From NCBI GenBank assembly GCA_964270895.1, contig OZ185440.1: a DNA stretch of 64,000 nucleotides; one strand, written 5' to 3'. Position numbers and translations under genes: made by a program. Origin of the DNA: Podarcis filfolensis (lineage: Eukaryota). The notes beneath the pieces are model-generated. The model made no database searches and was not told the DNA's origin. It was given only the letters and a program-made list of their open reading frames with translations. Positions 4,640 through 63,545 of the stretch are shown here, piece by piece (within the stretch, counting starts at the first letter, position 1; every line of letters begins with the position of its first letter).

Positions 4640-4980
4640 GGGACACGGGTGGCGCTGTGGGTAAAATCTCAGCGCCTAGGACTTGCCGATCGCATGGTCG
4701 GCGGTTCGAATCCCCGCGGTGGGGTGAGCTTCCGTCGTTCGGTCCCAGCGCCTGCCAACCTAGCAGTTCGAAAGCACCCCCGGGTGCAAACCAGTGGGAA
4801 GGTAAACGGCATTCCGTGTGCTGCGCTGGCTCGCCAGATGCAGCTTGTCACGCTGGCCACGTGACCCGGAAGTGTCTGCGGACAGCACTGGCTCCCGGCC
4901 TCTAGAGTGAGATGAGCGCACAACCCTAGAGTCTGGCAAGACTGGCCCGTACGGGCAGGGGTACCTTTACCTTTACCTTT
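4640..4980 (+). mobile_element. Sauria SINE, near full length with internal deletion
   Basis: GGGACACGGGTGGCGCTGTGG head, B-box GGTTCGAATCC, (ACCTTT)n tail. Confidence 0.92.
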
Positions 4981-5399
4981 AATGCAGACAGTTGAGAAAC
5001 ATGTCAGCTTAGTTAGTGACCAAGTTCAACATATATTTCTTATAACCCAAATATTGTGCAACATAAACATTGGATAGACTTGACATGAGCATTTTGAAAA
5101 GTTTCTCCAGAGTGCCTACCCTTTGCTTATATTGTGATTCCATCATGTGAGGAGATGGAAAAATCAGAAATTGGTAACTCCCTATTCTATTGGGGCAGGG
5201 GGAGTGATACAAGCAACCCTTTACTCGCATAGATTGGACTGTGTTGCTGCTTACCCCTGCCTAGGTCATTAGCTGAAATATGTCATTTGTTCTGCATGCT
5301 AAAGCAGGGGTGGCAAAACTTCCTCTTGCTAAAAGCCAGAACTATATTGGAAATCTGTATCAATAGCTCTAACTTCGATGTGTTAATATTTTCTGATAG

Positions 5400-45515: not shown

Positions 45516-45566
45516 TTTAGCAATCTGCAGCAACACAATGCAGTGTTTTATTGATTCAACCATGCT
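45516..45566 (-). CDS. OSBPL9: ORP9 51-nt exon SMVESIKHCIVLLQIAK
   Basis: Identical to recalled human sequence; contains the Met reported as the start of mammalian ORP9S. Confidence 0.97.
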
Positions 45567-50428: not shown

Positions 50429-50524
50429 CTTCAATTGGTCTATCAAAATTTGTAGATAAGCATCAGCTTCTGTAAGTTTTTTATCAAAATCTTGGACACT
50501 GGGAACAAATCCAGGATCCACACC
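50429..50524 (-). CDS. OSBPL9: ORP9 exon [32 protein letters not shown]
   Basis: Near identity to recalled human sequence; AG/GTATGT flanks. Confidence 0.97.
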
Positions 50525-51141
50525 CTATGTAAGAGAAATGCATTACATTTGAACATATTTACAGAACACACTGAACAGCACCTCATTAGCTGCAAGATTG
50601 AACTGGGCAAATTTCAAAACCATGGAATAACCTGCCTAGATACACTTTAAAGAATGAAAAAGGCTAGAACATTATATTATTCCTACAGCATAGTGAAATG
50701 ATTAACTCACTGCGAGGACTAGGGCTCTCCTAGCACTATTCTAAAGCCTAAATATTATGTTCTTGTGAGGTTAACTATTTTGCTACGTAAGCCACATCAC
50801 AGCAAAATTGTTACTAAGGTGAAGCATCCAATACTCTTCCAACTAAAGTTTCCTTGTAAAACCAGGCCTTACAAATGAATTCTCAAATAATAGAAATAGA
50901 AGCAACAATCCAGAGCAGCTCAATTGTTCAAGCCTATACGTGTTTACTCTGAAAGAAGTCCCGCAGTGTTCAATAGATCATATCCCCAGGATAAATACAC
51001 ACAAGACTGTGCTGAAAATCTACACTGGATTGTGACCACAGATGAATCAAGAAGAAAGGGTATTTCCACACCTCTGCTTTTTTCCTGCTTTTTCATCTAC
51101 TTCATTTAAACAGCCTCTCTTATCCTCCTCCAAAATGCATA

Positions 51142-51531
51142 AAAAGGTAAAGGTAAAGGACCCCTGACACTTAAGTCCAGTCGCAGACGATTCTGGGGTT
51201 GCGGCGCTCATCTCGCTTTACAGGCCGAGGGAGCCGGCATTTGTCCACAGACAGTTTTTCCAGGTCATGTGGCCAACATGACTAAGCCCCTTCTGTCACA
51301 ACGGAACACCGAAACCAGAGCACACAGAAACACTGTTTACCTTCCCGCAGAGCGGTACCTATTTATAAGTAGCTAATACTTGCACTTTGGGTGTGCTTTT
51401 GAACTGCTAGATTGGCAGGAGCTGGGACCAAACAACGGGAGCCTCCCATCGTGGGGATTTGAACCGCTGACCTTCTGATCGGCAAGCCCAAGAGGCTCAG
51501 TGGTTTAGACCACAGCGCCACCTACGTCCCT
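51142..51531 (-). mobile_element. Full-length Sauria SINE with about 13-bp TSD
   Basis: Head GGGACGTAGGTGGCGCTGTGG, (ACCTTT)n tail; TSD TCCAAAATGCATA (51129-51141) and TCCAAAATGGATA (51532-51544). Confidence 0.92.
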
Positions 51532-53079
51532 TCCAAAATGGATATAAGGCTTAAATGCTTATATCCATGTTTTAAATGCTATGTTTTAGCATTTAAATGC
51601 TAAATCCAATGTTTTAAATGCTAAGCAACCTTCACTTTTAAGAGAAGCAATTTTAGAAGACACATACTTTAACAAAAAATATTTAAGGAACAGAAGATTC
51701 CTAACAGAATCCAAACTGTCACTCTTTCACTTCCCTGCATCTGTTTCCACAATAATGTGACCTCTAGTGAAATACGTGCAGTGCTTCTATCATAGCTATC
51801 TTTCACATGCATGTAAATGACATAAAATGCTACAAACTTCATTCAGTTTTAAATGTTAGTTAACTCATTTACATTTTATGTATTTCAGTGAGCATTTGCA
51901 TTATTTCCAATGAAAACGAAGTTAAATATACTCAAGTCTTAGAGGTATTAAAAAACCAAGTAATTAAGCTATTAGCATTATGTTACAAGTTCTGCACTAC
52001 ATTCCTTTTTAAACTAGTATGATTACTAAGCTATTTAAGTACCTCAGCATTCATTAGAAAGCAATTCTACCTGACCAGGTTATATAAAAGAGGCCTTATA
52101 AGCTCACTCACCAGAACATGGGAGCCAATTGTGACTTCTGAAATGCATAAATTCCTTCTGAAGTACCACAGAAGTGCACACTGAATGCTCAAAATGGCCA
52201 CAGAACAGTGCTTGAGTCCCTTTGGGCATCCTGTACATTTGCTACTCTTTCCTTCCTGTGAAATGCCTAAAGGTATGTGATCCTTGTTAGAGTTATACCT
52301 TATTTGCTGTAGAAGTCTGAATGATCCTTAAAATGAACTGGGATGTTTGCCCCACATTATGTAACATTTAGGACATAGCATGACCACTACAAGAAATACA
52401 CTACAAATGCTACCTGCCCAACATTGTTTCACCAGCAAGTATTTGGCTCTTGAAATTCTTTAGAAAAAAATCAGGGTCTACCCAGCAACTGTAGAGCCTA
52501 CCCTCTCCCCATTGTTTCTAGGACCAATTTTCCTAATCTGCAAAGAAATACACCCACTTTCCAGAGAGTCATGGAAACATGTTGGGCATATGCTGAGGGA
52601 AGGAAGGATCACAAGATCCTTTAGTTGTGGGAAGCATTTCTAATCACTGGGAGAGATTGGCTTCCATGTCCATTCTGGGCTACAGGACCAAGTTCCTATG
52701 ACCTCTTGGAAGTAACTGAAGCATTTCAGTATGTCTTCTTATTTGAATAATGTTGTATGCTTTAACAGTGTACACTACTTTGATGTTCCATGACACAGCG
52801 GTATAGAAATCCTTTTCTAAATAAAACGTAACTCAAACCTACATACTGTGAAAGAAGCTGATTTCAATAGGATGTGAAAGGAAAACTAACTTTCCTGCAG
52901 CCGAAATACGAACTAGGCTAACCATCGAGTGGGTTTTAGAAACGATCTCCTTATATCGCGGTCGAGGTGATCAAACTGGAACTGCTTGTTTTTAAACAGC
53001 AAAGTCAGTGGCAGTAATTAGCCACTTCCACCAATGGCAGACAATGGAGCCTGCCGGACTGAAATCAGGCAGGGCTGCT

Positions 53080-54400
53080 GGGGGGGGGTGAGTGCACCCC
53101 CTGGTGTAGCGCGCACACAAGCGCCGCGCTCTTCCTCTCCTGCGATCAATGGCTAGAGCTGCTGCGTGCGATCCCCGGCCCCGGCTGCAGGTACAGGTTC
53201 AGGGCCGCGGGCTTCGCAGCCCGCCCCCTCTCCTCCCCACCCACCCCGATTATACACGGGGTCGACCACAGAACCGAGGCGTCCGGGTGGGCCTCCGTAA
53301 GCGCAGGCTGACGGAGATCGAGGGCGCCCCCTCCTGCCAATGTCAACGCTGCGCCGCCCCAACGCCCGGCCCTACTCACGCAAGCCATGCTTCCTCCCCT
53401 CCCGGGCACGCTGCCGGGCGGGGTCTGTCGTCGGCTGGGCCCCCTGCCCGCAGGGAAGCCGCGTCCCCAGCCCGCCGCTCGAGAGCAGCGAGGCTCTCCT
53501 TCGCACCGAGCCGGCTCCCGATTGGCTGCGGGTCAGGTGCCTCCCAGCCCGGCCCTTTCCTCTCCCCCGCCCCGCGCACCGACTGAGAGGGGGACGCATA
53601 ATAGCCATACACACCGGGCTGCTTCCTTCCAGCCGGCGCTGCCGGCTTCCTCCCGCTTTCTCTCGAGGGCATCCTTCGTCCCGGGAATCTCCCGCCTTCA
53701 GCGGTAGCCTCTACCCAGCAAGGCTGCAATCGGGGCAGGAAGACCAAATCGCCGCGCGCTGAAAGGAAGCCCTGATTGGAAGGGCTGCCTTGGAATCCGC
53801 AGCACCGACTGACCTCGGCCGCCGCCTCGCTACCCAGCGGGCTGCTTGGAGTCTAACCTCACGCGCAGCGCCACGGAGGACACGGGCTCATCCGGATATG
53901 TCACCCGCCCCCTGCCTTCTTGCATCATCTGAAATGCCTCCGGCAGCTTTCTTGTTATTGGCTACAGCGCCGATCGCTCTTTTCCATTTCGCAATCCTGA
54001 CCCCCGTTTTACCTACGAGCGGACTTACTTCTGAGCAGGCATGGCTAAGATGCTAAGACTAACTTTTCGCATCCGCCTAGATTTCTGTAGCTCACTGTCC
54101 TTCACCACCTTTAAGCGCAGCGTGTGCACAGTTTCTGCAGAACGCAGTTAAGAACCTTTGCAAGGCTAGGCCTGCGAATCCTGACTATTTGGAATTGGGT
54201 ATCACTGGCGTGGATCCAGGCTAGACCAATTCCACTCTGCGCATCGGGGTTTTTCCGCCCAGCAGTCCCTTACACTGCCTGGAAAGCTGCTCCTGTCAGA
54301 GGAATCTTCACCATAGCAGGAGGCGGGGCTGCGGCCAGAGGAAAATCTAGTTTCCCCGATTTCCAGCACCTTTTGGGGGGGGGCGACACACGGAGCAGCC
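53080..54400 (-). promoter_or_regulatory. OSBPL9: Intronic CpG island, internal promoter of OSBPL9
   Basis: Abrupt GC/CpG-rich block in AT-rich DNA; CCAAT boxes on the - strand at about 53521, 53776 and 53957; GC box CCCGCCCC at about 53566. Confidence 0.85.
53380..53388 (-). CDS. OSBPL9: Candidate alternative first coding exon Met-Ala-Cys
   Basis: GGAAGC-ATG-GCT-TGC followed by GTGAGT; strong Kozak (A at -3, G at +4); phase 0 matches the exon at 50524. Confidence 0.75.
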
Positions 54401-55331
54401 ATGAGAAGGGGAGCATAAAACATCACCTGGCCTGAATGCGGCTTAAGCCCAAGTAAAGCATGCTTCAGTGCCAAGCTGCCATTTTCTAACGTTTCTCACT
54501 TGAAACGTCACTATGATTGATGCCCATTAATATTAGGCAGTTGTGCCTCTGCATTTGCTCACTACCTTAAATATTAAAAGTGCACCTGCTGTTATCCATA
54601 GCTGGTGCCAGTGTCTCCAAAGAAATCCCTTTCTGTGATAGCACCTTGGAGTGGCTAATATTCTCAGGAGGAATATTTACATAGCAAAGGTTTCAAAGCA
54701 AGAATATGCAGGTTTAGTTTTGTTTGGTTCCCTTTCCCCTTCTGCCAATGTGCAACACAGACAGCACTAATTTCTCCATCATTATGCACTACAAAAACAC
54801 AGGAGTTGGGATGTGTTTCTGTATAGTTCAGTGTTATTTGTATGCTACCATAAGCAATGCTTGATAAGCAAGATTTTGGCAAAGAGTACAGGTTCATTAT
54901 TTGGATGAACTGGAGATCCAGAGGTGCAGTGACTTGAAAATTCCTGCAATGATCTTAACATTGCCTCCATTCTTTTTTTTTTTTTTAATCCAAGGCTTTG
55001 TTTCAGGTAAAGAAAATAGAAATTAAAACTGCGAACAGGTCATTGAGTAGAGTCCACATAACAATCATCACAGGAATCTTCCCATCATTGTATTCTTAGA
55101 TCTCCAGTTCAGTTACAAAGGTTTCTCATTCACAGACCGGCAATAATGTAAAATTTGTCAACTGAGGTGCTATATTTGCAAGATGGAGACATGATATATG
55201 GCTTAATTTCACAATAAATGTAAGAACAAATATACACTCATGGAATAGAGATTAGTATGGATTACATTTTATACAGGTATTATGCAGAACATATGCATCT
55301 CTTTTAGCTTAGGCTAAACTGACTAACGCAC

Positions 55332-55408
55332 CTGAAGCTGAAGAGTATGACGAAGGATGGTTTCCTCTAAAGCATGAATCCATTTCTCTCTCTCATCAGC
55401 ATCTCGAG
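55332..55408 (-). CDS. OSBPL9: ORP9 exon (A)[25 protein letters not shown] (C-terminal helix of PH domain)
   Basis: Identical to recalled human sequence; CAG/GTGCGT flanks. Confidence 0.97.
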
Positions 55409-62812: not shown

Positions 62813-62971
62813 CCTTTCTACTGGTGAACCATAGCATGCAATGACGAAACATAGCAGTAACAGATGGCATTGGAGTTGTAAATATGAATAAAAAGATAAA
62901 ATAGCAGGAAAATGATGTTTGGCAGACAAGAACAAAGAAATAGAGATGAAATGAATGAGAACTTGTAGATC
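62813..62971 (-). other. Candidate unannotated OSBPL9 exon (159 nt, phase 1/1, stop-free)
   Basis: TTTTTGCTTCAG acceptor, AAGG/GTAAGG donor, open frame joining the exon at 55408. Confidence 0.4.
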
Positions 62972-63405: not shown

Positions 63406-63545
63406 NNNNNNNNNNNNNNNNNNNNNNNNNNNNNNNNNNNNNNNNNNNNNNNNNNNNNNNNNNNNNNNNNNNNNNNNNNNNNNNNNNNNNNNNNNNNNNN
63501 NNNNNNNNNNNNNNNNNNNNNNNNNNNNNNNNNNNNNNNNNNNNN
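63406..63545. other. Assembly gap (140 N)
   Basis: Direct reading. Confidence 1.

Follow-up and report, generated by a model that had tools for sequence, protein, structure and literature searches.

An internal start that yields an ORD protein without its N-terminal targeting domains is a principle known from ORP1S and ORP4S. The short ORP9 form analysed here would follow the same principle, but ORP1S and ORP4S are encoded by different genes. For OSBPL9 itself, the short form described in human is ORP9S (Wyles and Ridgway 2004, as cited in PMC11966592 and PMC4177916), a PH-less promoter variant in which the FFAT motif and the ORD are kept. It lacks the PH domain and has been called 'a truncated promoter variant' (PMC4177916); it contains 558 residues, versus 723 for the long form (PMC11966592). 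In mammals, ORP9S has been reported from liver. The same 165-residue offset is seen in the mutant numbering L393D / L228D (PMC10964951), and ORP1S and ORP4S have been used alongside ORP9S (PMC10964951). The region between the PH domain and the ORD carries two helices through which ORP9 dimerises with ORP11 (PMC11302984). Like human ORP9S, the form that we describe below is a PH-less OSBPL9 product with FFAT and ORD; its predicted start lies elsewhere in the gene.

The sequence under study, hereafter the window, is the whole stretch of 64,000 nucleotides taken from the lacertid lizard Podarcis filfolensis (assembly GCA_964270895.1, contig OZ185440.1). ORP9 exons were mapped on its minus strand from 55408 down to 23750 by tblastn with ORP9 proteins. 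Window exons were searched as separate rows in a five-row alignment (MAFFT), and homologue searches also used parts of the ORP9 proteins of other species (residues 140-340, 38-636 and 40-480). All top database matches of the window exons were named ORP9. Twelve sampled exons were 99.1% identical to Podarcis ORP9, 98.4% to Lacerta agilis ORP9 and 94% to that of Pogona. The last PH-domain exon, located by tblastn and read directly from the sequence, spans 55332-55408 on the minus strand; it ends in ...LQLQ with the junction ...CAG/gtgcgt, in phase 0. It is followed by a 96-nt exon of 32 codons, GVDPGF...DQLK, at 50429-50524 (minus strand, read and translated), which is common to the long isoform, has phase 0 at both ends and is preceded by the acceptor ...acatag/GGT, with its AG at 50526-50525. 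According to the tblastn maps and exon translations, the remaining exons, used by both isoforms and encoding the helical linker, the FFAT motif and the ORD, lie between 48965 and 23750 on the same strand. The FFAT exon, between linker and ORD, was identified by translation at 32350-32201, and the ORD exons by tblastn at 30664-23750; one of them, 28730-28587, matches PF01237 Oxysterol_BP in Pfam with an E-value of 1e-11.

Some further features of the region were observed along the way. A second CpG island (GC 0.58-0.66, observed/expected CpG 0.70-0.89) at 4701-5000, about 19 kb beyond the 3' end of OSBPL9, is probably the promoter of a neighbouring gene, and the window contains a run of N at 63406-63545. 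At the Podarcis muralis locus (L003, 1-1014), a calreticulin-family gene (PF00262) stands head-to-head with the main OSBPL9 promoter island. The long forms of ORP9 in Gekko and Terrapene span more than 100 kb. On the minus strand of the window at 62813-62870, an ATG opens MPSVTAMFRHCMLWFTSRK, followed by one more base and a GTAAGG donor; because it matches the N-terminus of Pogona vitticeps ORP9 X4 and X5, this segment is, judging from its sequence, a further alternative first exon, with a predicted phase-1 splice to the last PH exon at 55408.

The original prediction placed an internal CpG-island promoter in the intron that separates the last PH exon (ending at 55332) from the exon starting at 50524. 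Measurements of GC content and of the observed/expected CpG ratio bear out the island, which we delimit at 53000-54000 and which presumably acts as a TATA-less alternative promoter of OSBPL9 on the minus strand. In 200-nt windows from 53101 to 54000 GC content ranged from 0.60 to 0.76 and the CpG ratio from 0.82 to 1.04; the means for the whole window are 0.40 and 0.25, respectively. Eight consecutive 200-base windows over this interval exceeded the limits usually set for a CpG island (GC above 0.55 and ratio above 0.65 over more than 500 bases). The three CCAAT boxes announced on the OSBPL9 strand were all found there, with their first gene-strand bases at 53961, 53779 and 53525: a distal box at 53957-53961 (-573 from the ATG of the first exon described below), a middle box at 53775-53779 (-391) and a proximal box (AGCCAATCGGGAGCC) at 53521-53525 (-137). 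In simulations matched for dinucleotide composition, 0.30 CCAAT boxes were expected in the island, and the probability of finding at least three on one strand was about 0.003. GC boxes had also been put forward. Four are indeed present, but 2.1 were expected in the dinucleotide-matched simulation, so that their number is not above what composition predicts. We therefore dropped them as promoter evidence. One of these, CCGCCC within CCCCGCCC at 53416-53421 on the minus strand (-33 from the ATG), is conserved in Pogona at -32. No TATA box was found in the island promoter of the window, and Rfam returned no family match between 50600 and 55300. Forward CCAAT boxes lying upstream at conserved positions are the configuration of a CCAAT-type TATA-less promoter, at which binding of NF-Y is predicted. 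Because of these boxes, the island promoter is probably NF-Y dependent.

Within this island, an ATG GCT TGC sequence encoding Met-Ala-Cys was read at 53380-53388 on the minus strand (ATG 53388-53386, GCT 53385-53383, TGC 53382-53380) and forms the coding part of the candidate alternative first exon. It directly adjoins a GTGAGT 5' splice site in phase 0 at 53374-53379. The ATG lies in the context GGAAGCATGG, with A at -3 and G at +4, in agreement with the strong Kozak context ascribed to it; an in-frame stop is found 49 codons 5' of it, and the window contains no upstream ATG from -211 to this start codon. As both the Met-Ala-Cys exon and the last PH exon end in phase 0, either can be joined in frame to the exon at 50524. 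The coordinates and phases of the splice that had been proposed were thus confirmed by direct reading, with consensus on the intron side only: GTGAGT is a consensus sequence, but the exon side, TGC, is not. Scored with an approximate position weight matrix, the donor reached about 0, and with the same approximate matrix several GT sites located 5' in the island, none of them associated with an in-frame ATG, outscored it. In view of the weak exon side we abandoned the label of 'strong donor'. Among the higher-scoring sites, the donor-like sequences GAG/GTCAGT and GAA/GTAAGT at 53813 and 54028 on the minus strand could serve non-coding first exons.

In order to evaluate the conservation of this arrangement, the window was compared with the OSBPL9 loci of Podarcis muralis (L003), Pogona vitticeps (L002) and the thrush Turdus rufiventris (L004). 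An intronic CpG island is present at the same place in all of them (L003 30001-30900, L002 47001-48000 and L004 27101-27900), and each of these islands contains the pattern ATGGC..G.GTGAGTA. The first-exon DNA of Podarcis muralis, ATGGCTTGC, is the same as that of the window; Pogona has ATGGCTTGT, which also encodes Cys, and Turdus ATGGCCGGT, which encodes Met-Ala-Gly. GTGAGTA follows in every case and is invariant across the four species, as are the purine at -3 and the G at +4 of the ATG. The window and Podarcis islands are 95.5% identical. With Pogona, the sole part of a 1.4-kb island query to align was 53553-53277 (77% identity over 288 bases, E = 2e-55), a promoter-proximal block that takes in the proximal CCAAT box and the presumed 5' UTR as well as the first exon and some 100 bases of the intron behind it. 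In each of the three lizards (window, Podarcis and Pogona) the proximal CCAAT box stands at exactly -137, embedded in the block CAGGCACCTGACCCG.AGCCAATCGGGAGCCG, which does not vary among them. The distal box is common to Pogona, where its counterpart TAGCCAAT stands at -556 with partly conserved flanks; the middle box is limited to the lacertids, with a counterpart at -383 in Podarcis and none in Pogona. The thrush promoter has the ATG-donor core and one CCAAT box, at -168 from the ATG, in common with that of the lizards and little beyond, and is otherwise not alignable. That lizards and a bird have kept the ATG with its Kozak context, together with the GTGAGTA donor, is the pattern expected of a start codon and a splice site that are used.

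Annotated proteins agree with this exon structure. RefSeq contains 635-residue ORP9 isoforms with a MACGVDPGF start in Podarcis raffonei (X5, XP_053248437.1), P. muralis (X5, XP_028589338.1) and Pogona vitticeps (X6, XP_078249000.1), all of them computed models as their XP_ accessions indicate, and the Met-Ala-Cys start also occurs in two further Pogona splice variants. The 635-residue product that had been predicted equals these isoforms of Podarcis and Pogona; for the window product, whose exons were left unjoined, the length is taken from these orthologues. The three isoforms have the same N-terminus and the same number of residues as the window form. Podarcis differs from it in that its sampled exons are nearly, not fully, identical, and Pogona in that its Cys3 codon is TGT instead of TGC and the middle CCAAT box is absent. 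Pfam detected Oxysterol_BP alone in the 635-residue form of P. muralis X5, and both PH (residues 4-98) and Oxysterol_BP in the Podarcis long form. These orthologous assignments, together with the FFAT exon and the ORD exons mapped in the window, support the prediction that the short form lacks the PH domain and keeps FFAT and ORD.

The same type of first exon extends well beyond these species. A MAS-GVDSGF start was found in 635-residue isoforms of eight turtle genera (Carettochelys, Terrapene, Chelonoidis, Gopherus, Mauremys, Chrysemys, Malaclemys and Trachemys), in Gekko (637 residues) and in the cordylid Hemicordylus (631 residues), while sea turtles and a 105-member bird cluster have a MAG- start. 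Like the window form, these turtle, gecko, cordylid and bird isoforms (631-637 residues) join a three-codon Met-Ala-x first exon onto the same exon, but their third residue is Ser or Gly, versus Cys in the window. In its intronic position within the island, its phase-0 splice to the GVD(S/P)GF exon, its N-terminus and its ortholog-based length, the window feature conforms to these Met-Ala-x isoforms. Other first exons join this GVD exon in more distant lineages: MALRAPRY- in the echidna, MAVEGCSS- and MAVKGCSS- in frogs and the short, unrelated MFIGARRP-, MSHKD- and MKPVASQ- in ray-finned fish. Judging from the short first exons of frogs and fish spliced onto the same exon, the PH-less arrangement is older than amniotes; the suggestion that it is ancestral to amniotes, based here on the turtle, gecko, cordylid and bird isoforms as well as on frogs and ray-finned fish, holds and is conservative. 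Besides these isoforms, we noticed mammal-like ORP9 fragments (MAFLLATCG...), among them P0039, P0054, P0071 and P0055, which start with MAFLLATCGVRFVPSVQ... and some of which have internal defects; these resemble mammalian, possibly primate, retrocopies of short-isoform OSBPL9 mRNA.

Taken together, we are highly confident that this lacertid lizard has, in the window feature, a conserved alternative OSBPL9 promoter together with its first exon. Transcription would start in the intronic, TATA-less CpG island downstream of the PH exons, at a site that should lie between the proximal CCAAT box and the ATG. The first exon would supply Met-Ala-Cys only, and its GTGAGT donor would join it in phase 0 to the exon at 50524, so that all PH exons are bypassed. 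The predicted product is a 635-residue ORP9 devoid of PH domain, in which the helical linker, the FFAT motif and the lipid-transfer ORD are retained. We infer that the island promoter is active in Podarcis filfolensis.

This form had to be positioned with respect to classical ORP9S. The earlier statement that mammals make PH-less short forms of ORP9 is right in that a PH-less promoter variant exists, but classical ORP9S is shorter, with its 558 residues, and is a different form. From the 165-residue offset, human ORP9S would start at the Met of MVESIKH. In reptiles, isoforms of 573 residues starting with MVESIKHCIVLLQIAK are annotated in Lacerta agilis (X6), Podarcis (X6/X7), Pogona (X7) and many turtles, and we take them to be the counterpart of classical ORP9S. 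In the window, the exon SMVESIKHCIVLLQIAK at 45516-45563 on the minus strand holds the Met that opens these annotated isoforms of Lacerta, Podarcis, Pogona and turtles. The window form does not begin about 165 residues into the long form, as classical ORP9S does: it would start directly after the PH domain, about 62 residues before the 573-residue reptile forms, and thus keep the first part of the helical linker. The offset of the 558-residue ORP9S and the existence of separate 573-residue reptile forms both argue that the 635-residue form is a different, longer PH-less isoform.

The coexistence of these forms raises another explanation, which we find unlikely but which deserves to be weighed. 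The island could be a real OSBPL9 promoter of which the Met-Ala-Cys isoform is a minor by-product, most island transcripts using other donors or skipping exons and leading to the downstream Met, with the MVESIKH start of 573 residues in reptiles and 558 in human. The annotation of the 573-residue isoforms in the same species, Lacerta agilis, Podarcis, Pogona and turtles, is consistent with this reading, as are the 558 residues of the human ORP9S that has been studied experimentally (PMC11966592) and the stronger donor-like sites at 53813 and 54028, which have no in-frame ATG. However, isoforms starting with Met-Ala-Cys and with MVESIKH are not mutually exclusive, and a by-product does not sit well with an ATG, a Kozak context and a GTGAGTA donor conserved from lizards to a bird, with the lack of any upstream ATG from -211 to the start codon, or with the presence of the isoform, with Cys, Ser or Gly as third residue, in many independently annotated genomes. 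We thus retain the conserved alternative promoter with its three-codon first exon as the preferred reading.

Much less probable is the possibility that the Met-Ala-Cys exon is an annotation artefact: gene predictors would have taken incomplete models without the PH exons and prolonged them to the closest ATG followed by a donor in the CpG island. The island itself would then act as an enhancer, drive an antisense or non-coding transcript, or be an orphan island. The protein support consists entirely of computed models and the exon side of the donor is weak, as an artefact would have it. Yet protein similarity cannot place a three-codon exon several kilobases upstream, and models from many species nevertheless have it at the homologous site. 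Conservation of the 15-base ATG-donor core and of the proximal CCAAT block also reaches across a divergence at which the rest of the 1.4-kb island query no longer aligns, and a spliced fragment, MMAS-GVDSGF...MVESIKH, spans at least three exons. As to other functions of the island, the search of 50600-55300 against Rfam speaks against a non-coding RNA gene of a known family, and no other protein-coding gene was called inside the Podarcis or Pogona loci compared. An alternative first exon of OSBPL9 hence remains our reading of the Met-Ala-Cys codons.

The original prediction also considered Cys3 as a possible lipidation site that could substitute for the PH domain in membrane targeting, a proposal that found no support. 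Across sauropsids, Cys occupies position 3 in lacertids and Pogona only; most turtles, the gecko and the cordylid have Ser there, and sea turtles and birds have Gly. Ser, Gly and Cys at this position are set apart only by the first base of the third codon (A, G or T), whose last base adjoins the splice site. This variation looks like drift among small residues in a codon constrained by splicing. Myristoylation at Gly2 or a basic or hydrophobic patch usually accompanies N-terminal palmitoylation. In the window form, Ala stands in position 2 where myristoylation would require Gly, and the residues that come after Cys3 are neutral or acidic, with no basic or hydrophobic cluster, so that neither the conserved Cys of N-terminally S-acylated proteins nor the Gly2 or cluster that goes with it is found. 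Conservation of Cys in lacertids and Pogona despite the synonymous TGC/TGT difference would favour acylation, although a single site carries little weight, and a Cys also occurs near the end of the first exon elsewhere, in the frog sequences MAVEGCSS and MAVKGCSS and in the mammal-like fragments (...ATCG). Given the Ser or Gly of turtles, gecko, cordylid and birds and the simpler membrane route offered by FFAT-VAP binding and helix pairing with ORP10 or ORP11 (PMC11302984), S-acylation of Cys3 in place of the PH domain is the least probable of the explanations considered, and we give scarcely any credence to its lineage-specific version, in which Cys3 arose in the lacertid-iguanian ancestor and has been kept since as a membrane anchor of PH-less ORP9.

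For the PH-less product of the alternative promoter, we rather propose that the retained FFAT motif would bind VAP on the ER, and that membrane contact would be achieved by this binding combined with pairing of the helices with PH-bearing ORP10 or ORP11, not by lipidation of Cys3. Considering that the helical region is retained and that ORP9 pairs with ORP11, pairing with a partner is, in our view, a more economical membrane route than a new lipid anchor. In a milder, likewise speculative variant of the idea of a specialised isoform, the 635-residue form may be a functionally distinct third ORP9 isoform equipped with the ORP10/ORP11-pairing helices, which classical ORP9S may lack in part.

The Met-Ala-Cys isoform and its first exon are already known, RefSeq listing both for sister species, and PH-less ORP9 of alternative-promoter origin was already recognised in mammals in 2004, so that the value of the present observations as a discovery is small. 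The gain is comparative: lizards and a bird share the Met-Ala-x micro-exon with its GTGAGTA donor, the proximal CCAAT box keeps its place at -137 across lizards, and equivalent short first exons are found in frogs and fish. The 635-residue form appears not to have been studied separately from classical ORP9S. It would keep the start of the helical linker involved in ORP9-ORP11 pairing, unlike the 558-residue ORP9S, and could on this account be of interest for work on the ORP9/10/11 complexes.
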